64,000 nucleotides of DNA from Bacillus subtilis subsp. subtilis str. 168 (GTDB taxonomy: Bacteria > Bacillota > Bacilli > Bacillales > Bacillaceae): the NCBI RefSeq assembly GCF_000009045.1, contig NC_000964.3, positions 3,658,001-3,722,000 on the forward strand. Reading direction: 5' to 3'. Shown here piece after piece: positions 6,205 to 20,399 of the stretch; within the stretch, counting starts at the first letter, position 1, and each line of letters opens with the position of its first letter. The translations under genes were made by a program, and so were the position numbers. The notes under the pieces are model-generated. The model was not told where the DNA came from. It saw nothing but the letters and a program-made list of their open reading frames with translations, and searched no databases.

Positions 6205-6243
6205 AAAAAGAAGCTTCGCACAATGTGCAAAGCTTCTTTTTTA
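6205..6243. terminator. Bidirectional terminator tagU/mnaA
   Basis: AAAAAGAAGCTT...AAGCTTCTTTTT hairpin between convergent genes. Confidence 0.85.
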
Positions 6244-7383
6244 TTTGCCTGTAAATGAATCCGGTTGTTCTTTTCGATACCCGTAATGAAACAGCAATTC
6301 TTCCACAATCCGGCGGGAAGCCTCTCCATCTCCATACGGATTAGAAGCCTGGGACATTTTCTTGTACTCATCAGGATCAGTTAACAGCTGTTTTGCAAGC
6401 TGATAAATGTTTTCCTCATCCGTACCTGCAAGTTTCAGCGTTCCCGCTTCCACTCCTTCAGGCCGTTCCGTCGTATCACGCAGAACAAGAACCGGTTTCC
6501 CGAGAGATGGGGCTTCCTCCTGCACGCCGCCCGAATCGGTCAATATAAAATGCGATTTCGCTGCAAAGTTATGGAAATCGATCACCTCTAAAGGTTCAAT
6601 CAGATGCACTCTGTCAGAATCACCAAAATGCTTATGAGCCGCTTCCCGGACAACAGGATTCAGGTGCACAGGGTAAACGACTTGTACATCTTCAAATTCC
6701 CCTACAATTCTGCGGATGGCCTTAAACATGTTTTCCATTGGCTCACCCAAATTTTCCCGGCGGTGAGCGGTCAAGAGAATCATTTTATCCTCACCCACCT
6801 GATCGAGAACAGGATGTGAGTAACCATCCCTAACCGTTGTGTTGAGTGCGTCAATCGCTGTATTGCCCGTTACAAAAATAGAGTCGGCCTTTTTGTTTTC
6901 TTTTAATAAATTGTCTTTCGCCTGGCCTGTCGGAGCAAAATGCAAATCAGCAATCGCCCCTGTCATCTGTCGATTGAGCTCTTCCGGAAACGGGGAATAC
7001 TTATTCCCTGTACGGAGCCCCGCCTCCACATGACCGACAGCAATTTGATGGTAAAAAGCGGCTAGGCTTCCGGCAAACGTCGTCGTCGTATCACCATGGA
7101 CAAGCACAATATCGGGTTTGATATCTTTAAACAACTCATCCAATCTTACAAGTGCGTTAGACGTAATCTCTGCCAGTGTCTGCCGCTCCTTCATAATGTT
7201 CAAATCGAAGTCAGGCTTGATGTGAAACGCATCTAACACCTGATCGAGCATCTGTCTGTGCTGTGCAGTTACCGTTACATAGGAATCTATTTCAGGATAT
7301 TTTTTCAATTCAAGCACAAGCGGTGCCATCTTGATCGCTTCAGGCCTGGTCCCGAAAACGGTCATCACTTTTAGTTTTTTCAT
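6241..7383 (-). CDS. mnaA: UDP-N-acetylglucosamine 2-epimerase
   Basis: VFGTRPEAIK, HVEAGLR and DSGGVQEEA motifs; start taken as MKKLKV at 7383. Confidence 0.96.
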   Translation of the reverse strand: MKKLKVMTVFGTRPEAIKMAPLVLELKKYPEIDSYVTVTAQHRQMLDQVLDAFHIKPDFDLNIMKERQTLAEITSNALVRLDELFKDIKPDIVLVHGDTTTTFAGSLAAFYHQIAVGHVEAGLRTGNKYSPFPEELNRQMTGAIADLHFAPTGQAKDNLLKENKKADSIFVTGNTAIDALNTTVRDGYSHPVLDQVGEDKMILLTAHRRENLGEPMENMFKAIRRIVGEFEDVQVVYPVHLNPVVREAAHKHFGDSDRVHLIEPLEVIDFHNFAAKSHFILTDSGGVQEEAPSLGKPVLVLRDTTERPEGVEAGTLKLAGTDEENIYQLAKQLLTDPDEYKKMSQASNPYGDGEASRRIVEELLFHYGYRKEQPDSFTGK

Positions 7384-7548
7384 ATTTGTCACCTGGTTTT
7401 CTGCTATAGTAAATAAATTCATACTACATATTCTACATGAAAATGCATCATTTTAAATCATTTCATTCTTGATTCAAATAAAATGATATAAGTTTTAATA
7501 TTAAGGATAAAGCTTGTTTAAAAATGGTTTATCCGATATCATAAAAAT

Positions 7549-7628: not shown

Positions 7629-8507
7629 ATGAAAAAAGTACGTAAAGCCATAATTCCAGCAGCAGGCTTAGGAACACGTTTTCTTCCGGCTACGAAAGCA
7701 ATGCCGAAAGAAATGCTTCCTATCGTTGATAAACCTACCATTCAATACATAATTGAAGAAGCTGTTGAAGCCGGTATTGAAGATATTATTATCGTAACAG
7801 GAAAAAGCAAGCGTGCGATTGAGGATCATTTTGATTACTCTCCTGAGCTTGAAAGAAACCTAGAAGAAAAAGGAAAAACTGAGCTGCTTGAAAAAGTGAA
7901 AAAGGCTTCTAACCTGGCTGACATTCACTATATCCGCCAAAAAGAACCTAAAGGTCTCGGACATGCTGTCTGGTGCGCACGCAACTTTATCGGCGATGAG
8001 CCGTTTGCGGTACTGCTTGGTGACGATATTGTTCAGGCTGAAACTCCAGGGTTGCGCCAATTAATGGATGAATATGAAAAAACACTTTCTTCTATTATCG
8101 GTGTTCAGCAGGTGCCCGAAGAAGAAACACACCGCTACGGCATTATTGACCCGCTGACAAGTGAAGGCCGCCGTTATCAGGTGAAAAACTTCGTTGAAAA
8201 ACCGCCTAAAGGCACAGCACCTTCTAATCTTGCCATCTTAGGCCGTTACGTATTCACGCCTGAGATCTTCATGTATTTAGAAGAGCAGCAGGTTGGCGCC
8301 GGCGGAGAAATTCAGCTCACAGACGCCATTCAAAAGCTGAATGAAATTCAAAGAGTGTTTGCTTACGATTTTGAAGGCAAGCGTTATGATGTTGGTGAAA
8401 AGCTCGGCTTTATCACAACAACTCTTGAATTTGCGATGCAGGATAAAGAGCTTCGCGATCAGCTCGTTCCATTTATGGAAGGTTTACTAAACAAAGAAGA
8501 AATCTAA
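7629..8507 (+). CDS. gtaB: UTP-glucose-1-phosphate uridylyltransferase
   Basis: [21 protein letters not shown] signature; full-length 292 aa. Confidence 0.98.
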
Positions 8508-8509
8508 AC

Positions 8510-8547
8510 AAAAAGGCTATTGGACATTCATCCAATAGCCTTTTTTT
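8510..8547. terminator. Bidirectional terminator after gtaB
   Basis: AAAAAGGCTATTGGA-cattca-TCCAATAGCCTTTTT; identical copy at 15528-15565. Confidence 0.92.
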
Positions 8548-8603
8548 ATTTCAACATCAAAGTCAATGTATGCTCTTCATTATCAACTGCGAAGACCTGA
8601 TCA
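8546..8603 (-). pseudogene. Stub of the tagH 3' end
   Basis: Encodes [18 protein letters not shown], identical in protein to the TagH C-terminus; 3 synonymous differences. Confidence 0.9.
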
Positions 8604-9090
8604 ACGGCCTGCCGCAAAAATTAATAATCCCAGACAAACACACTGATTGTAGAGTTAAACAAACTAAATGAAAACATAAATACAAACATGCAGATTAAAT
8701 AGTAAATATCTTGTATTCAATGCAAGCTAAGTAAACACCACTTGCTAAAAGAACAATGACTAAACAACCAGCATTACAAAATAATTAAATAAATTTGAAG
8801 CAATTACAACAGAAGGCAGTGAACTGTCGGAAAGTTCATTTTGGCTACCATATTAATCCCTTTAACTACGCTGTTGGATTTATCAAGAATTGTCGGGCTA
8901 ATAGAAAACCACGGAATCAAACCAGCCAGCATTCAAACGATAAAAGGCACTTCTCCGATACCTGTTATGACCAGCTTACTGTTGCGCATCCCAAATACAA
9001 ACCAGTACGCCATCATTAGAATAAGGGGATTTAAAACCTGCCATAATACACCAAAATAATTGATTTTTTGGATCTTTCGGTTAAAGAAAT
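8604..9090 (-). pseudogene. Diverged, disrupted tagG-like ABC permease relic
   Basis: [31 protein letters not shown] (W to stop); further homology to tagG continues to the LLQAV region, then joins the tagH stub. Confidence 0.88.
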
Positions 9091-9108
9091 TTAAAAGTAC
9101 CAGTGAAT

Positions 9109-9136
9109 ATTGTAACAAATGTTGAGTTTTTTTCAC
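9109..9136 (-). promoter_or_regulatory. Relic copy of the tagG promoter
   Basis: GTGAAA-16-TACAAT with TG extension, homologous to 18064-18092. Confidence 0.6.
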
Positions 9137-9208
9137 TTTTAAAAAGTAAAGAGAAGTCTCGCAGAACTTCTCCCAACATTTGAAGTGTCAATATAAAACA
9201 AACCAACC

Positions 9209-11911
9209 TCATTTAGCAACTTTATTATTATCTAATTCCAAAATAGCATTATAAATACGATTCCTATTATTTTTATCAGTATATGCAAAAAAGTTATCTA
9301 CTCTTTTTCTATACTTATCTTCCATACGACTATTGTTTTTCATATAATAGATAACTTTATCCACTAAGCTATTATGATTTTCTAATACATCACCAAACCC
9401 CATTTTTTTATAATCATAATAATCAAGTTTAAAATGGTATGACTTTTCGTATTGATAATAAATAACAGGTTTTTTCTCATATGCAAAATCAAACGCAACA
9501 GATGAAAAATCAGTAATCATTATATTAGAAGAATTAAATAGCATTTGATAGCTGCTGTTATAGTCGGCAAACTCCACATAATCATGCTTTTCAAAGTCTA
9601 CAATCTGTTGCTGAATATCTGGGTGAGGAAAAAAAGTTATTTTATAATTATTTTTCTTAGCAAATTCGATTAGCCGTTCATCATTAATCAAAGCATTATA
9701 CCTAGAAAAATATTCACTATCTTTAAATTTCGGGTTGTACGGTCTTACTCCTTTTGCCTGATCTTTCGGTAATACAATATCTTTTCTCCAAGTCGGCATT
9801 ATTAGAAGTTGCTTTTCTCCCTCACTCTTCTTAAGATTATCGTATCTCGGAAATCCACCCAACAAAATATTCTCTTTTTTATAGTTGTAATTCCCTTTCA
9901 CAATAGACCGATATTCAGGTTTGGCAGAAGTGACTAATAATTTGATATTCTTGTTGTATTTGTTTAACCATTCAGAATGATCTGCCATTGTTATTCCGTG
10001 CTGTAAAAAGATAAACTCAAAGTTAAATAAATCTCTAAAATAAATCTCCATATTAAAAAATGGATTTACAACCCATATATCTGCATGTGTCGATATTACT
10101 TTGGAAGAGGATAAGGTTAAAATTTTATGTCTAAAAGATCTGTATGGTATGACCTTTCCATATTTTTTGATTCTGTCGTAATCCTTGCTATCTTTTTTTA
10201 TTATAAAGTATTTTTTTACCCCATCATTCTTGTTGATTGCATATTTAAAGAGGTGCTCGGCATTATCATCAGCTTTGTCTTGTCTGTCTATGAATAACCA
10301 TACTGGTTTTCTATTAAAAATAGTGAAAACATGGTGTACCATTCTTGCCATCAGTGCCTTCTTAATCGCTGATTTTCGTTTTTTTGATTTTTCCCCTGAT
10401 TTATGTAGGGATTTTAAGAAACGAAACTCTTTTATAAATCTATTTTTAAAATTGTTTTTTTTGAACATTAATTTTTTATAATTATAATAAAAAATATAAT
10501 CTTTTTTAGCCACATAAGTATTATATAAATCGTTTGACAAACCTGAATACTTGAAAAAACGAAGTTTTGTCAACTTCCTTTTTTTACCCTTAGTTATAAA
10601 AAACTCAATATGATGATTATCTGCTAGATGACCTTTGGGAATATCTATTGAAAAACCGGGATATTTTTTTATTACTTCTCCTAAACTTATATAATCATTA
10701 TGCTGTCTTTTTATATTCTTTGCTTTTATTTTTGTTTCGCCAATTTTAGCATAAAACTTAAAACCTTTAGAATTAAACAGCGAGCTCCAAAAGCCTTCTA
10801 TGTGAATGGAATCCTCATTTTCTTCTAAAATTTCAATAGTTAAAGTTTGATCCGATAATTTCGAAACAATTTTACCTTCTCTGTATAAATAATAATCCTG
10901 TTCAGTTTCTCTTTCATATACATACCTACTATAATTTTCACCGTGCTTTATTTTTAAAGCATGATATAAATAGAAATGGCTGACACTTTTTGTTTCAATG
11001 ATGACATCGTCGTCAATATACGACAATACTTCTCGAATCAATGTTAAAAATTCACTGTATTCATTTTCGTCTAAAGGTGTTTCACTGATATCCTTAATCA
11101 ATAATTTCCACTTCAAATCATGCATAACCATATATTGAAGAAATAAAGGTATTTTCTGTTCATGATTTTTTATAATATCGATTAAATTCTTTGAGAAAGT
11201 GATAAGTGAATGGTTAAACCAATTCTTATTTGCTTTAGCAGTCTGCATGGCAGATGATCCATCTTCTCTAACTCTATAATGGTATTTTGCCTCTTTAACC
11301 AGACCATACTTTTTCTTTTGCGATATGATTAAATTAACTAGTTTGGCATCTTCACCTATTTTACAATTTTCATCAAACCTGATATTTTTCAAGGCATCTT
11401 TTTTTATAAATGTAGAACAACAATGAGTTAATATATGATGCGGTTCTTTTTCTACATCCAAAATTCTTGTAGAAGAAAACTTATTATTTAGATTATGTTC
11501 TCCAGTTCTTCCTTCTGCAAAAAAAATAGGGATTGCTACAATATCAATTTCATTCTTATGTTCGTCAAAGAAGTTTAAAACATTTTCGAATGTTCCTTCT
11601 GAAACTAAATCATCCGGATCCAAAAATTGAATATATCTACCTTCAGCATACTTTAAACCATAATTTCGAGCACTGCTCACTCCGCCATTCTGTTTCTTTG
11701 CATAGACAATGTTATTGGGATATTTCTGAGCATATTCTTTACAAATGATTTCACTTTTATCGGGGCTATCATCATTCACCAGTATTAACTGAATATTCTC
11801 AAAACCAATAGTTTGGTTAATGATACTTTCTATAGCTTCAGTGAGATACAACTCAACATTATAAATCGGCATTATAACACTGAAATCATAGTTAAAACTT
11901 TTTTCGTTCAT
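9209..11911 (-). CDS. ggaB: Minor teichoic acid synthesis protein: GT2 domain plus C-terminal CDP-glycerol glycerophosphotransferase-like domain
   Basis: GT2 N-terminus (PIYN..DDS, LDPDD); LQHG, GFPRYD, MPTWR and ITDFSSV polymerase-family motifs; very AT-rich. Confidence 0.93.
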   Translation of the reverse strand: MNEKSFNYDFSVIMPIYNVELYLTEAIESIINQTIGFENIQLILVNDDSPDKSEIICKEYAQKYPNNIVYAKKQNGGVSSARNYGLKYAEGRYIQFLDPDDLVSEGTFENVLNFFDEHKNEIDIVAIPIFFAEGRTGEHNLNNKFSSTRILDVEKEPHHILTHCCSTFIKKDALKNIRFDENCKIGEDAKLVNLIISQKKKYGLVKEAKYHYRVREDGSSAMQTAKANKNWFNHSLITFSKNLIDIIKNHEQKIPLFLQYMVMHDLKWKLLIKDISETPLDENEYSEFLTLIREVLSYIDDDVIIETKSVSHFYLYHALKIKHGENYSRYVYERETEQDYYLYREGKIVSKLSDQTLTIEILEENEDSIHIEGFWSSLFNSKGFKFYAKIGETKIKAKNIKRQHNDYISLGEVIKKYPGFSIDIPKGHLADNHHIEFFITKGKKRKLTKLRFFKYSGLSNDLYNTYVAKKDYIFYYNYKKLMFKKNNFKNRFIKEFRFLKSLHKSGEKSKKRKSAIKKALMARMVHHVFTIFNRKPVWLFIDRQDKADDNAEHLFKYAINKNDGVKKYFIIKKDSKDYDRIKKYGKVIPYRSFRHKILTLSSSKVISTHADIWVVNPFFNMEIYFRDLFNFEFIFLQHGITMADHSEWLNKYNKNIKLLVTSAKPEYRSIVKGNYNYKKENILLGGFPRYDNLKKSEGEKQLLIMPTWRKDIVLPKDQAKGVRPYNPKFKDSEYFSRYNALINDERLIEFAKKNNYKITFFPHPDIQQQIVDFEKHDYVEFADYNSSYQMLFNSSNIMITDFSSVAFDFAYEKKPVIYYQYEKSYHFKLDYYDYKKMGFGDVLENHNSLVDKVIYYMKNNSRMEDKYRKRVDNFFAYTDKNNRNRIYNAILELDNNKVAK

Positions 11912-12034
11912 AAAAGATTACTCCTAACATAATGTTTATATGAATAAGAATTCGGGTAAATAAAATTAAGAAACAAGAGAGTACTAATTTTTGCAAAACA
12001 ATTTTAATTTAGTAAAATGTATGAAAAGCATTCC

Positions 12035-13375
12035 TTACCTTTTTTTAAAAACCCTTGTAAGCAAACTTTTAAAAATGTTCACATGGTTAAGTTCTAAAGA
12101 ATCATTTGGTGTTTTTAGTACAAAGTCAAATGCAAAGGCCCAAATCGGTATTTCGACAACAAAACCAGCATATCTAAAATCTCTTAATTTATATCCCCAT
12201 ACTTCAATTGTTTTTTTCAGTTCTTTTCGTTTGCATTTTTTTAATCTTTTAAAATATTTTATATATATTCTGTCATTTTCTTTCATCTCATAATACTGGT
12301 TAATAAAGTGCCCTGTTAATTCAAGTCTAAGCCCTTTTATTTTTGCCGAAGTAACAGTACATGAACTATGCAGTACTCTTTCTTTTTTTATATTTTCAAG
12401 AGCTTCTGTATTTTCTTTTAATAAGTGAAACATAAATTCTTTATAGTACATCGGCATATCTTGTTCTTTTATAAATTGCGGGTCAATAAATTTTAAAACT
12501 TTAATAAAATCATCAACAAAAACTCTTTGTTCTTGTTGATCTAAAACAGACTTATAAACATCTCTATAGTTCGGATATAAAAACAGTTTTATATGATATA
12601 CAATTAAAAATTGCAAATAAGGCAAAACTATATCATATTTGTTGAATGAATCCATCAACAAAGTCATGTAACATTCATTCAACAAATATGTGTACCTTTT
12701 TTTGTTAAACCATGAACGATCAACTAAAGAATCCTGTTCTTTCCGTTTTCTATAAAAATACTTTCCTTCTGCAACTGCTCCGTATCTTTTTTCTTTCAGT
12801 AATAACTGGTTAAAAAAGATAGCGTCTTCCCAAAACTTTATAGATTCATCAAAAAGGACGGTACTAGTTAGTGTATGTCTTCTGTAAAAAGTGCCGCCAA
12901 TATAAAAATGAATAGCTTTATAATCGTTGAGAATATTTATAACTCTTGTTCCTTTTTCAAATCTATTATTTAATTTATGTCCCCCTTCTTTTTCACCTGT
13001 GTAATAAACAGGTAATACCGCAATATTTACATGTTCGGAATCACAAAAAAAATCATAAACACTTTGCAGCGCATTTTGAGAGAATGCATCGTCAGAATCA
13101 AGAAAACCAATAAATTTAGATCTTTCGCTTACATTTGATAATCCACAATTTCTTGCAGCAGAAGGTCCAGAGTTTTCAATTTTCATGATTTTAATATTAT
13201 TAGGATATAGATTTTTAAAGGATTCACAAATTTGAGGACTGCTGTCAACACTACCATCATCTATTAATATCAGTTCTATATTTTCCTTAAATCCAATTGA
13301 CTGGTTAAGGACACTCTCTATTGAATATCTTAAATAATTTTCAGAATTATATATTGGTATAATTATAGAAAACAT
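12035..13375 (-). CDS. ggaA: Minor teichoic acid GT2 glycosyltransferase
   Basis: IIPIYN, IDDGS and FLDSDD GT2 motifs; AAAGAGG RBS. Confidence 0.93.
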   Translation of the reverse strand: MFSIIIPIYNSENYLRYSIESVLNQSIGFKENIELILIDDGSVDSSPQICESFKNLYPNNIKIMKIENSGPSAARNCGLSNVSERSKFIGFLDSDDAFSQNALQSVYDFFCDSEHVNIAVLPVYYTGEKEGGHKLNNRFEKGTRVINILNDYKAIHFYIGGTFYRRHTLTSTVLFDESIKFWEDAIFFNQLLLKEKRYGAVAEGKYFYRKRKEQDSLVDRSWFNKKRYTYLLNECYMTLLMDSFNKYDIVLPYLQFLIVYHIKLFLYPNYRDVYKSVLDQQEQRVFVDDFIKVLKFIDPQFIKEQDMPMYYKEFMFHLLKENTEALENIKKERVLHSSCTVTSAKIKGLRLELTGHFINQYYEMKENDRIYIKYFKRLKKCKRKELKKTIEVWGYKLRDFRYAGFVVEIPIWAFAFDFVLKTPNDSLELNHVNIFKSLLTRVFKKR

Positions 13376-13398
13376 GTTTGTACCTCTTTATTTAGAAG

Positions 13399-14106
13399 TT
13401 AAAGGATCGTTTCAATTACTCTTTTAGAAGCCTTGCCTCTTCTAAATTACAAAATTTATTATAAAAATCCTCATAGTTATGATCTATATAAGGATTATGT
13501 AACAACTCTTTTACCGTATCTATAAGTTCTTCACTTGTTTGAAGCAAGTTTCCTGGCGTTTTTTGCTGAAAATTAAAGTAAAAACCTCTGATACAGTCTC
13601 TATAAGCCGGGAGATCATACACAAAAAATACAAGGTTTTTTTAAAAATTCATATTATCAAAAAAGACAGAAGAATAATCCATAATCAATAAATCACTAAT
13701 TAAATATAAATCTCGAATATCTTTATTTAAAGAAACATCGTTCACAAAATATTTATATTTCCCTAATTAAATTGTTCTGAAACTGGATAATACCATTCTT
13801 ACAAGAATAACCATAGAGTCTCCAAGGTTCCCTCTTCATTTCCTCTAATCAAATTAAAGTTAAATTTATACTGGCCAGCTTTCTTAAAATTCATTATCCC
13901 GCAAAGTTGGTGCATATAAAATTATTTTTCTTTAATTCCTTATTTGATAATGTAGAATTGGTAGGGGATTGTAGCTAAACTGTTTCCAGAATAGCTTTCA
14001 AATAAAATTAATTTATTGTTTCTTGGCAGAAGGACAAAAATTTTAAACAAAACTGAATAAACTCTAACTAGTAAACTTCTGCAATTGGTTATAATAAAAA
14101 TTTCAT
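13399..14106 (-). pseudogene. Relic of a short TarF-type glycerophosphotransferase
   Basis: RBS AAGGAG + ATG at 14106. Fragments across several frameshifts and a large internal deletion: LLVRVYSVLFKIFVLLPRNNKLILFESYSG/QFSYNP, KIILYAPTLRD, DIRDLYLISDLLIMDYSSVFFD, RGFYFNF, SKRVIETIL*. Confidence 0.88.
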
Positions 14107-14200
14107 CAGTGAACTCCTTAAAGAGTGAAGATTAATATTTACGCAAACAAGAAAAAAAGAAGCAACTGAATTTACTTCAAGCCTCTTTTAGTTAGTGCTT

Positions 14201-14393
14201 CTATAAACTAGCCATATCTTTTCTGATTTGGGTAGTTGAAATGCCTGCTATTCTTGTAAGGTAAATGGCCTCATAGTATTCCTTTGTAGACAATCGTACG
14301 ATTAAGTAATCCCAGGTTCTTTTGCTCTTTCCAGTAGCTTCATATGTCCATAGTGAAATAAATCAAACATTCCGTACGTATCACTTTCTTCAT
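14201..14393 (-). pseudogene. Relic of a TarD/TagD glycerol-3-phosphate cytidylyltransferase
   Basis: RBS GGAAGGTG; MKKVI/TYGMFDLFHYGHMKLLERAK/DYLIVRLST joined to EYYEAIYLTRIAGISTTQIRKDMASL*; two 1-nt frameshifts and about 65 codons deleted relative to TagD at 22581-22970. Confidence 0.88.
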
Positions 14394-14498
14394 TAGATAA
14401 CATCACCTTCCAACCTTTTCCAACTTAGAAAAAACAAAAATCCTTAACTGATTGTTTATCATTTCGACATATTTTTTACGTTCCATTAATAATAAACA

Positions 14499-14527
14499 AT
14501 AATAGCATATGTTCCTATAAAAGTTAA
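14499..14527 (-). promoter_or_regulatory. Relic SigA promoter homologous to PtagD
   Basis: TTAACT-17-TATTAT with TG extension; flanks share TCGACATATTT and ATAGCATA with the tagD promoter. Confidence 0.6.
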
Positions 14528-14673
14528 GGCTCTTTAAAAATGTAAATCATCAGCACTTTTTGACAATATCGTTGCATTGATGTGTATTTTTTACAGATCT
14601 GATATCTTATCTATACTCATTACAACAAGTTTTCTATTCCGGAAGAGTCAATTCTTTTTGTCGCGTTTTCAAG

Positions 14674-14699
14674 TGTAATGATTTTCTTTCTGCTGCGTC
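14674..14699 (+). promoter_or_regulatory. ECF (SigX/SigM-like) promoter in the relic divergon
   Basis: TGTAAT-16-CGTC versus consensus tGtAAC-16-CGTC. Confidence 0.5.
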
Positions 14700-14860
14700 A
14701 TTTATTTTGTACGCCCTCCTCATATTACTTCATCGTCAAAACGTGAAGGAATTGTAATACGTAGTTCCTAAAAATTTTCGTGGTAAAATTTAGTGAAGTC
14801 TTTATCAGGCTAAGGGACTTTATCTAAACTACGAATTACATATGGAGATATATAGATGAA

Positions 14861-14899
14861 AAGGAGGGTTGATATGATATAAACGAAAATCAATTAGAT
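14861..14899 (+). pseudogene. Possible tarA/tagA 5' stub
   Basis: Perfect AAGGAGG then ATG ATA TAA ACG AAA ATC AAT (M-I-*-T-K-I-N, compare TagA MQTETIHN), divergent from the tarD relic; very short, so weak. Confidence 0.4.
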
Positions 14900-14941
14900 A
14901 AAGGAAAAACTGAACACTTCTGAAAAAAGTGATAAGTTTCT

Positions 14942-17159
<2,218 letters not shown>

Positions 17160-17166
17160 TTACGTA

Positions 17167-17994
17167 TTAAAGAAAGTCAACAAACTTGTCTCTGAATTTC
17201 ATATGCAGGATAGAACCTACTAACAATAAAAGGAATGTGAACAACCAAAAGTACAGCGTGTACTTCATGTCATGGAAAAACCATGCTCCATCTAAGAAGC
17301 TGTTCCGGAATCCTTCAATAATATAGAATAGTGGATTCAACTTCAGAACAGGCACTAATTCGGGGTGGCTTTGACCGAGTTTCGCATTAACATCCCAAAA
17401 AATTGGCAACAAGAAAAACAAAAGTCTTGTTACGGCCTGCAGCAAAAATTGATAATCTCTAATCAGCACACTGATCGTTGAGTTAAACAAACTAAACGAA
17501 AACATAAAAGCAATCATACAGATGAAGTAATAAATATATTGTAACCAATGCACACTCGGGAACACACCATTAACTAGGAGTACAATGATATAAATCACCA
17601 TCATGATCATATAACTAAATAAGTTAGATGCAATTGCCACGGACGGTAGAGAACTAATCGGGAAGTTCATTTTAGCCACCATATTAATGCGCTTAAATAC
17701 ACTATTTGATCCATCAAGTATAGTTGGACTGATGAAAAACCATGGGATTAATCCTGCCAGCATCCAAATAATAAAAGGCACTTCGCCCGCTCCGGTTGTC
17801 ACAGGACCGCCCTTTCTAATCCCCATACCAAATACGAACCAGTAGGCCAGCATTTGGATAAGCGGATTTAAGAACTGCCATAAGACACCTAAATAATTCA
17901 TTTGATATTTAGACTTGGTTTCATAAGCCGCCAATCTTAAAATTAAAGGAAATGACGTTATTTGCTCTCTGAGTATACGCAACAAATCATTCAT
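17167..17994 (-). CDS. tagG: Teichoic acid ABC exporter permease
   Basis: ABC-2 permease with [12 protein letters not shown] and [12 protein letters not shown] motifs. Confidence 0.97.
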
Positions 17995-18063
17995 TTTTTA
18001 TCTTCCTTAGACTTAATTGTTTTTGGGAATCTTTCTGTTTAAAATTTGAAAGCACCGCTGATT

Positions 18064-18092
18064 ATTGTAACAGATCCTGCATTTTTTTTCAC
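18064..18092 (-). promoter_or_regulatory. Probable SigA promoter of tagGH
   Basis: GTGAAA-17-TACAAT with TG extension. Confidence 0.6.
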
Positions 18093-18158
18093 TTCTCAAC
18101 AAGTATCTAAAAAGCTGCCGAAAAATCGACAGCTATACATTTTATAAAATAACCTAAA

Positions 18159-20399
18159 TTATTCAGCTTTAAATACAGTATTAACAACCTTTTCAGATGA
18201 ACGTCCTGACTCTAAATAGCAAAACTTATCATAGAAAGGACCAAAAGAAACCGGAAGCTTATAATCAGGCGATGAGATCTGCTTGATAGCCTCAATCGTT
18301 TCTTCAGTAGTTTTTACCAAAGGACCAGGAGCTTCTTTTTCAAAATCAAAGTAGAAACCACGCAACTTGTCCCGGTAGGTTTCGATGTCAGGGACAAAGA
18401 ATAGCATTGGCCGTTTTAAATTTGCAAAATCAAAGAATACTGAAGAATAATCAGTAATCAGCAAATCAGAAACCATATACAATTCTCGAATATCCTCATA
18501 AGCAGAAAAATCATATGCAAATCCTTCAAAAGGACCTAAATCAAAATTCTCAGCTACCAGATAATGCATTCTTAAGATTACAATATATTCATTTCCAAGT
18601 TCTTGTCTAAGTTGATGCAAATCTAAATCGAGATCGAACTTATAACGCCCTTTTGCATAGAACTGATCATCTCTCCATGTAGGGGCATATAAAATAACCT
18701 TTTTATCACGAGGAATATTTAACCTACTCTTTATCAATGATATTGTTTCCTCATTATTATCATTATGAAGAAAATCATTTCTAGGATATCCAGATTCAAT
18801 CATTGTCTTGTTAAACTGAAACGCCCGTGTAAAGATCTCAGTTGAATAACCATTTGGGGAAATCAAGTAATCCCAATTAGAAGCTTCCTTGATAAAATTC
18901 CTTTTATATTTTTTGGTGTTTGTACCAGGCATATGGACTTCTTCCATATCCATTGCAAGTCTTTTTAAAGGTGTGCCATGCCATGTTTGTAAATATGTTG
19001 TATGACTAGGTTTCGGAATCCATAATGGAAGCCGGCTGTTAACAACCCAATACTCAGCTCTTGCCATAGCGAAGAGCCATTTTAATGAGAGGCGATTAAT
19101 GTAAGGAATTCCCTTTTCATCAAAAGGCGCTGAATATTGTTTATTTACACTCCAATACATTTTATACTCAGGGTGGTTTTCCCGCATATATTCGTAAATC
19201 GCTCTCGGATTACAACTGTATTGTTTCCCATTAAAACTTTCAAAAATGACTGTTTTCCTTTTAACTGGCATTCTGCTAGCCATCATGAATAGAGATTTGT
19301 ATGTTTTAGTGATTAACTTGTTTCTCATTTTTGTGATCTTTTTTATTTTTGATACTAATCTCTTCTTCTTTCCTTTAATAAAGTATTTCATCCTTGTTTT
19401 CAGGCTATAGTCGTTTACTCTGATACCTAGAGTCTGCTTTTTCTTTTTCTTAAAGACTTCATAACGAACTGGTGCGTTGTTTGTTTTAATAATACTTACT
19501 AATCCTTTTAATTTGTTTTTTCGATCTCCTAAAACAAGAGCAGTGCTGTTGAACTGAATATCCGTTCCTTCATCGTCATTGCATATATACTCCATAAAAA
19601 GACGATAAACATAACGTTTTTCATTTGAGAAAGGAATTTCTTTCAAAGGCACTTTCACTTCAAAATCATACAGTTCCGGAACAAAACCATCTGCTCTCAT
19701 GTTTTCCAGGCCATGTGTTTTTCTTTCTAGCTTGATTGGAAATTTTTCCTCAATAGGTGTTTCTCCACCCTTTTTTAAAATAAGGTTCAAGTTTTTTATC
19801 CGATATTGATTTTCGGAACTCAGGTACCCCGCATAACCTGTTATGCTTATTTCTTCAGAGCTAATCTCGATTTGATCAAATCTGATGATTTTGGCCTCTC
19901 TTTTCACCTTAATAGAAAAGTTGCCTTTATCAGTTGTATAAGGTAAAATCAAAAGTTCTGTGGTTTGATCGACATGAAAGGCGCGCTCAATTGAATTTAC
20001 TTCAGCAGAAAGACGCTTCAAGAGTGGTTCCTGCTCCGCATCTTCATATTTTTTTCGAAATTCGACATAAAAATCATATGTTTGTCCCATTTCAACAGGC
20101 ATAGGCAAAACATGAGCATTTATCTCAGTTTTATACTCTAATGAGCCAGTGTTTTGAAGCGGAAATTCAGATTCCGTTCCTGAACGTCTCTCTTTCAGCT
20201 TTAAAAATAACTGGTAATCCTCTAAAAATTGGTGTTCTGAATCAATTGAGATTAACAATTCAAGACTTCCTAAATTGTTTTTCAAGCTTTTCAAAATACA
20301 TTTAATCACAGTGTTTTCAATCATTACTTTTTTCTGCTCCTCTGTATAAAAGCTCTTTCCTTTTTGCTTCCTTTTATTAGTGTCAACTACTAAGGACAT
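18159..20399 (-). CDS. tagF: Poly(glycerol phosphate) teichoic acid polymerase
   Basis: FESFNGKQYSCNP, QTWHGTPLK, GYPRND, YAPTWRD and ITDYSSVFFD motifs; start overlaps the tagE stop (TAATG). Confidence 0.97.
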   Translation of the reverse strand: MSLVVDTNKRKQKGKSFYTEEQKKVMIENTVIKCILKSLKNNLGSLELLISIDSEHQFLEDYQLFLKLKERRSGTESEFPLQNTGSLEYKTEINAHVLPMPVEMGQTYDFYVEFRKKYEDAEQEPLLKRLSAEVNSIERAFHVDQTTELLILPYTTDKGNFSIKVKREAKIIRFDQIEISSEEISITGYAGYLSSENQYRIKNLNLILKKGGETPIEEKFPIKLERKTHGLENMRADGFVPELYDFEVKVPLKEIPFSNEKRYVYRLFMEYICNDDEGTDIQFNSTALVLGDRKNKLKGLVSIIKTNNAPVRYEVFKKKKKQTLGIRVNDYSLKTRMKYFIKGKKKRLVSKIKKITKMRNKLITKTYKSLFMMASRMPVKRKTVIFESFNGKQYSCNPRAIYEYMRENHPEYKMYWSVNKQYSAPFDEKGIPYINRLSLKWLFAMARAEYWVVNSRLPLWIPKPSHTTYLQTWHGTPLKRLAMDMEEVHMPGTNTKKYKRNFIKEASNWDYLISPNGYSTEIFTRAFQFNKTMIESGYPRNDFLHNDNNEETISLIKSRLNIPRDKKVILYAPTWRDDQFYAKGRYKFDLDLDLHQLRQELGNEYIVILRMHYLVAENFDLGPFEGFAYDFSAYEDIRELYMVSDLLITDYSSVFFDFANLKRPMLFFVPDIETYRDKLRGFYFDFEKEAPGPLVKTTEETIEAIKQISSPDYKLPVSFGPFYDKFCYLESGRSSEKVVNTVFKAE

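Follow-up and report, generated by a model that had tools for sequence, protein, structure and literature searches.

Lazarevic et al. reportedly described in 2002 the ribitol-type wall teichoic acid genes of Bacillus subtilis W23 as a divergon of tarABIJKL and tarDF. Hybrid transformants between the tag genes of strain 168 and the tar genes of W23 are said to have been obtained by Karamata and colleagues. In pneumococci, capsule loci switch by homologous recombination in their flanks. Here we analysed a window of 64,000 nucleotides (nt) of B. subtilis subsp. subtilis str. 168 (contig NC_000964.3, positions 3,658,001 to 3,722,000), which covers the wall teichoic acid region of this 168-type genome. 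All coordinates given below are positions of the window. We focus on the segment 8546-14899, which carries the intact genes ggaA and ggaB; two seemingly empty stretches, 8508-9208 and 13376-14928, adjoin this gene pair. Our analysis indicates that the segment is very probably the remnant of the tarD-side half of a ribitol-type locus, left by one illegitimate join, altered by neutral decay and later turned into a mobile block.

Part of this was already known. Sutton et al. (2021, F1000Res, PMC8753576) found a tarF 3' remnant, the "devolved tagF" of clade VI, in 24 glycerol-type strains. It comprised bp 654-1185 at 93% identity and was covered by two small hypothetical open reading frames (ORFs). 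The position of ggaAB was termed "non-orthologous" and the gene pair was shared by ribitol and glycerol clades (PMC8753576). The same tarF remnant and the same sharing of ggaAB were observed here, but the tarD, tagG, tagH and tarA relics, the exact junction, the repeats, the cross-species junction and the module swaps are not part of that study. The annotation of strain 168 lists yvzE, a truncated gtaB copy, as well as yvzH and yvzI, which by position fall into the gtaB-ggaB and the ggaA-yvzE interval, where the tagG and tarF relics sit. Presumably, yvzH and yvzI are the tagG and tarF relics, respectively. These pseudogenes are annotated as isolated fragments. As far as we checked, the annotation includes neither the tarD relic and the tarA stub nor the fossil promoters, and it does not assign a common origin. 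Gene callers carry the relic ORFs as hypothetical proteins. A riboswitch-prediction study treated both stretches as intergenic candidates (PMC4448311). In the literature examined, we did not find the exact in-frame junction, the tarD, tagH and tarA remnants, the sharing across species, the repeat-bounded cassette or the fossil promoters, although an earlier description is possible. The expectation of the initial annotation that the novelty would be partial was right, since the tarF remnant (PMC8753576) and the yvzE, yvzH and yvzI entries precede this work.

The two stretches were searched by tblastn with the window's Tag proteins against 8400-15000 and aligned with the locus of B. inaquosorum KCTC 13429 (L001), which was retrieved by a GgaA search together with that of B. 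mexicanus (L002). The outermost piece on the ggaA side is a stub of tarA on the plus strand (14877-14899), recognised by DNA alignment (24/26 identical to L001). It holds the first 10 codons and is preceded by a ribosome-binding site, GGAGGG, at 14863-14868. Adjacent to it is the former divergent regulatory region of tarD and tarA (14394-14876, 87% identical). The relics that follow lie on the minus strand. That of tarD (14201-14393) consists of codons 1 to about 38, with a frameshift after codon 4, and of codons 103-129. Residues 6-28 of TagD matched 14379-14311 and residues 103-129 matched 14284-14204; identity to L001 is 88% in the 5' part and 89% in the 3' part. The tarD-tarF spacer (14107-14200), with an A-tract, a hairpin and a U-run, is the best-conserved relic part (87/90 identical positions, 97%). 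Of tarF, a 5' piece with the ribosome-binding site and codons 1-53 (13952-14106) is collinear with L001 at about 83-86% identity and was matched by TagF residues 356-412 (14119-13952). The 3' piece, codons 219 to 395 approximately, contains many frameshifts and 8 stops (13399-13929, 91.5% identical). TagF residues 576-743 matched it at 13931-13431 with 42% identity (E 2e-36). Between the pieces, 13 nt of the lost tarF middle remain within 13930-13951, AAATAAGGAATTA. The tarF relic ends 23 nt before ggaA, as noticed initially, and the intact tarF of L001 has the same distance to ggaA, with 22/23 spacer positions identical.

On the other side, ggaB is followed by a spacer (9057-9208, minus strand, 90.8% to L001) that contains a terminator hairpin at 9174-9149 (-12.3 kcal/mol, z -2.55) and a PtagG-type promoter. 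The tagG relic (8604-9064, minus strand, 90.5%) covers codons 32 to 188 approximately and has stops and frameshifts; the ribosome-binding site, the start codon and the first 31 codons are missing. It was matched by TagG residues 31-191 at 9067-8594 (56% identity, E 8e-51, 5 stops). At 8603/8604 the middle of tagG is joined to a tagH relic of 58 nt (8546-8603, minus strand), where the tagH homology ends. This relic holds the stop and the last 18 or so codons, with 51/58 positions (88%) identical to the tagH 3' end of L001, and TagH residues 504-527 matched 8620-8549 with 83% identity. TagA gave no match in 8400-15000 because only 23 nt of tarA survive. Relic ORFs also matched the Pfam families Glyphos_transf (3e-11, tarF) and CTP_transf_like (7e-6, tarD). 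Chance similarity in AT-rich DNA is ruled out by the E-values and the base-level collinearity. Thus the promoters, the four relics and the intact ggaA-ggaB pair that had been proposed from the sequence alone are all present, with coordinates within a few bases. A 72-residue ORF runs antisense within the tagG relic (8841-9059, plus strand). Hundreds of Bacillus genomes list it as hypothetical, and this gene call is probably spurious.

The intact counterparts in L001 and L002 have the order tarL-tarK-tarJ-tarI-tarB-tarA / tarD (129 residues)-tarF (395 residues)-23 nt-ggaA-ggaB-tagG-tagH, converging on gtaB-mnaA. The same arrangement was found in four ribitol-type B. subtilis loci (L008, L010, L011, L016) whose GtaB is identical to that of the window. 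For all ribitol-type comparisons, these B. inaquosorum, B. mexicanus and B. subtilis loci stand in for W23. In L001 and L002, TarI and TarD scored above the curated NCBIfam cut-offs, TarA, TarB, TarF and TarL-like were best matches below them, and TarI and TarJ-, TarK- and TarL-like genes lie downstream of tarAB. The minus strand of the window from 14899 to 6139 is collinear with L001 7772-19143, extending through gtaB (95% identical), and overall the relics are 82-95% identical to intact ribitol-type loci. Relative to L001, the window has four deletions. They removed about 188 nt from tarD, about 480 nt from tarF, a stretch of 112 nt with the ribosome-binding site, the start codon and the first 31 codons of tagG, and one of 1,810 nt that reaches from about codon 188 of tagG to about codon 509 of tagH (L001 14912-16721).

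The relic therefore resembles the W23-type divergon, as represented by L001, L002 and L008, in having tarD, a short tarF, a divergent tarA and no tagE, a gap of about 500 nt, a site of the extracytoplasmic function (ECF) type toward tarA, 82-95% identity and a collinear order. It differs in that tarD, tarF, tagG and tagH are broken, tarA ends at codon 10, and tarB and tarIJKL are absent. The collinear order, the gap and the lack of tagE support the proposal that a locus of the tarD-tarF / tarA type left its remains on both sides of ggaAB. The D-F order without tagE is collinear with L001 7772-9977. Gap lengths of 480 nt for the relic and 399 nt for the live genes had been given correctly; the intact gap of L001 is 507 nt. 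The sequence motifs named in the initial annotation occur in the intact TarD and TarF of B. inaquosorum. A "relic ORF" in B. inaquosorum DKG76 was also considered as a composite and rejected; it is a frameshifted tarF in an otherwise intact ribitol-type locus.

To place the relics, we compared them with the ribitol-locus genes and with the live genes of the window, which are tagH (15564-17147), tagG (17167-17994) and tagF, tagE and tagD (extending to 22970) on the minus strand and tagA, tagB and tagC (from 23370) on the plus strand. The tagG relic is 90.5% identical to the ribitol-locus gene and 76.4% to the live gene. For tarD the values are 88-89% versus 67-70%, for the 3' piece of tarF 91.5% versus 59% and for its 5' piece about 83-86% versus about 53%. 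In maximum-likelihood trees, the tarF relic fell within the ribitol-locus tarF clade (SH-like approximate likelihood ratio test, SH-aLRT, 99) as sister to the tarF of B. subtilis L008, and the tagG relic fell within the ribitol-locus tagG clade (SH-aLRT 100). Both relics have long branches and are separate from the live genes. The live tagG is about 78% identical to ribitol-type tagG, and tagH and gtaB show ordinary between-species identity. Along 17270-18020, compared with L001, the identity is about 78% up to about 17270 and then 88-97% through tagH and gtaB. This step apparently marks the inner edge of the allele-specific cassette.

The join itself was mapped to 14899/14900. The intact tarA starts with ATG CAA ACG AAA CCC ATT AAT CAA TTA GAT TTT, and its counterpart in the window reads ATA TAA ACG AAA (7 nt gone) ATC AAT TAG AT, followed directly by AAA GGA AAA ACT GAA. 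Codon 10 of tarA is joined to codon 81 of gtaB, originally in frame. The ancestral tarA start at 14877-14879 is now ATA; the change of CAA to TAA and the 7-nt deletion come after it. The initial annotation had described a stub beginning with an ATG at 14874 and fused to the middle of gtaB. The stub and the fusion are borne out, but this ATG arose anew, one codon upstream from the dead tarA start. With a microhomology of at most 1 nt (TTAGAT in tarA, AAAGGA in gtaB), the junction is a non-homologous join beside a homologous tract, and the predicted illegitimate join to mid-gtaB can now be given to the base.

Downstream of the join, the truncated second gtaB copy yvzE (14900-15525, plus strand) comprises codons 81-292, originally in frame with the tarA stub; a gtaB-like ORF of 198 codons remains at 14929-15525. 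Its 5' part has decayed, with a 13-nt deletion, 12 amino-acid changes and about 4% lineage-specific change plus indels. The 3' 320 nt show 0.9% lineage-specific change and are nearly identical to gtaB. The segment 15244-15621 differs from 8226-8603 by about 2%, and the 5' half by about 8%. Gene conversion, or the endpoint of a recombination, is suggested by this similarity of the yvzE 3' part, the terminator and the tagH end. For the clean 3' part, later homogenisation with gtaB is a fitting explanation and a crossover during import of the block the alternative. In an evolution experiment, "numerous mutations in gtaB and yvzE" were reported in the same evolved isolates (bioRxiv 10.1101/2021.03.06.434191), which may reflect conversion between both copies. 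Decay is comparable to the left and to the right of the junction, as would be expected from a single inactivating event.

The same junction with the same ATG to ATA change was present in B. halotolerans ATCC 25096 (L003), B. mojavensis (L049) and L024, one of two loci of a second B. subtilis junction type. The other one, L027, also has the junction, and both L024 and L027 keep the 7 nt and the 13 nt lost from 168. In L049 the junction region has suffered a further 26-nt slip deletion, and elsewhere the deletions differ by lineage. B. halotolerans has kept most of tarD and more of tarF. An identical junction and start-codon change combined with differing deletions argue for a single origin followed by independent decay. 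A scan of metagenomes with the junction pattern gave 18 matches; just one of them was genuine, an L024-like locus (L037). Between the window and B. halotolerans, synonymous divergence (dS) is 0.58-1.17 for the tag genes and 0.46-0.74 for the core neighbours gtaB and mnaA, compared with 0.29 for ggaB and a p-distance of 0.13 for the neutral relic block. The yvzE 5' part of B. halotolerans resembles the gtaB of B. subtilis and B. inaquosorum and not its own gtaB. From the low divergence of the block and this affinity, it follows that the block reached a glycerol-type background as a unit in at least one lineage. Its formation would have been a single event in the B. subtilis/B. inaquosorum clade, with subsequent moves to other glycerol-type backgrounds; alternatively, local alleles may have overwritten the neighbouring tag genes. 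In B. halotolerans, we also noted that ggaA (L003 10001-11337) is split by a frameshift near codon 110, that a DDE transposase fragment replaces the tagG/tagH relic (14350-15279) and that the terminator after gtaB differs.

The block is bracketed by direct repeats of about 0.7 kb. The left copy (7869-8603, plus strand) consists of gtaB codons 81-292, the bidirectional terminator and the 58-nt tagH 3' end, and the right copy lies at 14900-15621. In a 168-derived genome-reduced strain with a 3.09-Mb genome (L022), the block was lost by a crossover at 7937-7957, leaving a hybrid gtaB that is yvzE-like from 7958. The sole gtaB of this strain (L022 12470-13348) is thus a gtaB::yvzE hybrid with about 12 pseudogene amino-acid changes. 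In two natural glycerol-type loci (L028, L029) the block is absent and gtaB converges directly on tagH. In L024 and L027 the block ends match 168 at 95-99%, and the interior is a different glycosyltransferase module. The swap breakpoints lie within the tarD relic (about 14327) and the tagG relic (about 8863), so the relics served as homology arms. This interior (13594-19813) encodes a 448-residue GT2 protein, an 894-residue GT2+Glyphos_transf protein and a DUF6270 protein and has its own, less decayed tarF debris, which suggests a second minor polymer type at the same site. No integrase or transposase ORF was found in 8546-15525, and the bounds are direct repeats of host genes, unlike a classical mobile element; fragments of insertion sequences occur only in L003 and L049. 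We tentatively propose, as a possibility that falls short of probable, that the block acts as a minor-polymer cassette mobilised by transformation, with dead host genes as its sole "mobility genes". The gtaB/tagH repeats would insert or excise it at any glycerol-type locus, the tarD and tagG relics would swap its interior, the fossil tarD promoter would express it, and the relics would persist through this use.

Whereas the relics have decayed, ggaA and ggaB have not. ggaB (9209-11911, minus strand, 900 residues) is 94.3% identical to L001 and ggaA (12035-13375, minus strand, 446 residues) 92.6%. Their ratios of non-synonymous to synonymous divergence (dN/dS) of 0.08-0.09 and 0.19-0.25, respectively, are those of genes evidently under purifying selection (0.08-0.25). 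For the relics, we counted lineage-specific substitutions in 933 columns of the tarD-tarF block that are present in five genomes. There were 46 in the window relic, 44 in the B. halotolerans relic and 13-16 in the intact genes. The coding parts of the relics thus change about three times faster than intact genes, and with broken frames and accelerated lineage-specific change they are pseudogenes.

The regulatory elements have fared better. The relic PtarD promoter on the minus strand has TTAACT at 14527-14522, a spacing of 17 nt and TG-n-TATTAT to 14499. It lies within a block of about 100 nt that is nearly invariant across four species and aligns with the live PtagD. A AAATATGTCGA box is common to the relic PtarD (14455-14470, minus strand) and the live PtagD (about 23075-23090, minus strand), about 25-35 nt downstream of the -10 region, and may be a regulator site. 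The relic PtagG (GTGAAA at 9136-9131, 16 nt, TG-n-TACAAT to 9109, minus strand) is intact and aligns with the live PtagG and with L001 and L008. Toward tarA, an ECF-type site is found with TGTAAT at 14674-14679, 16 nt and CGTC at 14696-14699 (plus strand); in the intact relative it reads TGAAAC-16-CGTC. A scan detected no terminator between PtarD and ggaA. The tarD-tarF spacer fold of -14.8 kcal/mol is no better than shuffles. The live tagD-tagE spacer (22500-22585, minus strand) forms a strong hairpin with a U-run (z -3.2), and a weaker counterpart follows the tarD relic (14140-14215, minus strand); this element could be an attenuator in both operons. The chances appear evenly balanced that ggaAB is still expressed from the fossil tarD promoter through about 1.1 kb of tarD/tarF debris. 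If so, as we predict, ggaAB may share regulation with the linkage-unit genes.

How could such a structure arise? We infer that the join of tarA codon 10 with gtaB codon 81 took place where a ribitol-type and a glycerol-type allele were present in one cell. The likeliest setting would be natural transformation within the B. subtilis/B. inaquosorum clade, by homology-facilitated illegitimate recombination or a transient merodiploid, both of which are documented in transformation (PMC6382021, PMC3784515). The immediate product would have had tagGH twice, tarDF in addition to tagDEF, and gtaB in one complete and one half copy. The ribitol-side duplicates, now redundant, decayed neutrally, whereas ggaAB, for which the glycerol cassette has no counterpart, stayed selected. 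Later, as the comparisons show, the block between the repeats entered B. halotolerans and B. mojavensis; its interior was exchanged in other strains, and the block was also lost again by repeat recombination.

This reconstruction has to be weighed against two other accounts of the relics. An in-situ duplication of the window's tagD, tagF, tagG and tagH followed by decay would explain the direct repeat of gtaB and yvzE and the paralogous pieces that are ordered like the live genes. However, the relics are 52-76% identical to the live genes and 83-92% to the ribitol-locus genes, the trees split them from the live genes with SH-aLRT 99-100, and they lack tagE and have the short tarF. The grouping with the live genes that a duplication predicts was not seen; identities and trees agree on the ribitol-type affiliation proposed initially, and we consider duplication excluded with near certainty. 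It has also to be asked whether the relics are kept for a function of their own, as small proteins, as a leader or riboswitch of ggaAB, or as a non-coding RNA from the relic PtagG. Conservation is indeed far higher in the promoter blocks and the tarD-tarF spacer than in the coding debris, the riboswitch-prediction study (PMC4448311) listed windows before ggaA and after ggaB as candidates, and the relics have persisted through about 5% neutral divergence. This account is nevertheless improbable, since an Rfam scan of 8400-15600 found no family, the coding parts change faster and carry different deletions in each lineage, the tagG/tagH relic of B. halotolerans is replaced by an insertion sequence fragment, and the block is dispensable in laboratory strains.

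Some observations speak against the illegitimate join and decay of a ribitol-type half as we describe them. The closest ribitol loci of B. subtilis still differ from the relic block by 6-18%, and none of them qualifies as a near-identical parent allele. With just 10 tarA codons surviving, it is only the gene content of relatives that points to a ribitol-type lost half (tarIJKL). Incoming DNA with long gtaB-tagH homology favours a clean swap, and the illegitimate product should therefore be rare. The natural empty-site strains may be ancestral and not deletion products. In this AT-rich region the matches of a promoter scan were no better than the shuffled background, so that the promoter calls rest on homology and conservation, and the hairpin and U-run of the tarD-tarF spacer could stop PtarD transcripts. 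Finally, the data fit either direction of the founding event, with the ribitol-type or the glycerol-type allele as the recipient. We examined the divergence of the gtaB copies and the flanks for a direction, and both sides of the junction were B. subtilis-like. The signal is lost since recombination has overwritten the gtaB copies and flanks, and no distant donor is needed.

Two directions come into question, each a serious possibility that does not quite reach an even chance. A ribitol-type B. subtilis with ggaAB could have taken up a glycerol fragment ('gtaB-tagHGFED/tagABC) by homologous recombination beyond tagC and an illegitimate join in tarA, replacing tarA-tarL. The outcome would match the structure seen here in full. 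The left, full-length gtaB has a sequence usual for B. subtilis, with 0-3 differences per 150 nt from other strains. In the tree, a ribitol-type tarF of B. subtilis is the sister of the tarF relic, and the nearest allele to ggaA is that of B. subtilis L008 (dS 0.13). Ribitol-type loci with ggaAB are also common in B. subtilis (PMC8753576). On the other hand, 2.3 kb of gtaB-tagH homology on the incoming fragment would normally lead to a clean replacement, and the decay-corrected yvzE is B. subtilis-like, so nothing marks the glycerol side as foreign. Moreover, divergence between B. subtilis and B. halotolerans is at the species level in the glycerol cassette but not in the relic block, so the composite was not created in this way in both. 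With the same weight, a glycerol-type chromosome could have received a ribitol fragment from gtaB to tarA codon 10, anchored in or upstream of gtaB and ending illegitimately at gtaB codon 81; ggaAB would then have been gained where no ribitol pathway ever operated. The product is the same, and the illegitimate end adjoins the anchor, as is typical of homology-facilitated illegitimate recombination. Transfer of the block into glycerol-type backgrounds is seen in the yvzE 5' part and the dS contrast of B. halotolerans, empty-site glycerol-type strains exist, and the yvzE 3' part matches the resident gtaB in 168 and L003, as expected of a crossover there. But gene conversion explains this 3' identity equally well (bioRxiv 10.1101/2021.03.06.434191), empty sites can be deletion products as in the laboratory strain, and the incoming DNA again had homology that should have been used. 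A merodiploid followed by deletion is a third route to the same product. Of the initial proposal that an acquired glycerol cassette replaced a ribitol pathway, the ribitol origin and the illegitimate join are therefore upheld, and the direction is one of two equally weighted readings.

With the ribitol-type origin of the block, several features of strain 168 can be understood. In ggaAB, the working part of a ribitol-type allele has survived, and for this reason the strain makes a ggaAB-dependent minor polymer besides its glycerol-type major teichoic acid; the three scattered pseudogene annotations yvzE, yvzH and yvzI obtain a common origin. The 0.7-kb repeat pair makes the region unstable, as seen from its loss in laboratory strains, which leaves a hybrid gtaB with pseudogene-derived substitutions. 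Like homology-facilitated illegitimate recombination and merodiploid formation (PMC6382021, PMC3784515), the locus shows a non-homologous junction beside long homologous tracts and a partial duplication in a transformable host; the junction itself has at most 1 nt of microhomology, and the derivation from either process is putative. As in the switching of other surface-polysaccharide loci, allelic polymer cassettes are exchanged between conserved flanks, probably under phage pressure. Unlike capsule-type switching, the exchange was unclean: half of the other allele remained in place and subsequently turned into a mobile sub-cassette. The locus is a well-resolved example of a known process, the exchange of surface-polymer cassettes that leaves pseudogenes. 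As a dated, base-resolved natural case in which surface-polymer alleles recombined illegitimately and the product then spread across species, it should be useful for work on the cell wall, phage receptors and genome engineering; the general picture of cassette exchange is unchanged.

Beyond the relic block, gtaB (7629-8507, plus strand) and mnaA (6241-7422, minus strand) are the core neighbours. The ribitol-type B. subtilis loci L008, L010, L011 and L016 (4752-9660) have three extra genes between mnaA and gtaB, which encode a TarS-like GT2 protein with TarS_linker/TarS_C1, a GT1 protein and a 455-residue protein. In the same loci, the first 140 nt of gtaB show 17 silent differences to the window. 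A further B. subtilis cassette type was found in L017 (13513-20879), where gtaB converges on tagH-tagG. Beyond tagG, this locus encodes a 731-residue GT2+Glyphos_transf protein and a short TagF-like protein of 398 residues, followed by a tagD / tagA-tagB-tagC-like arrangement. The tagABC genes of L017 are 91.5% identical to those of the window.

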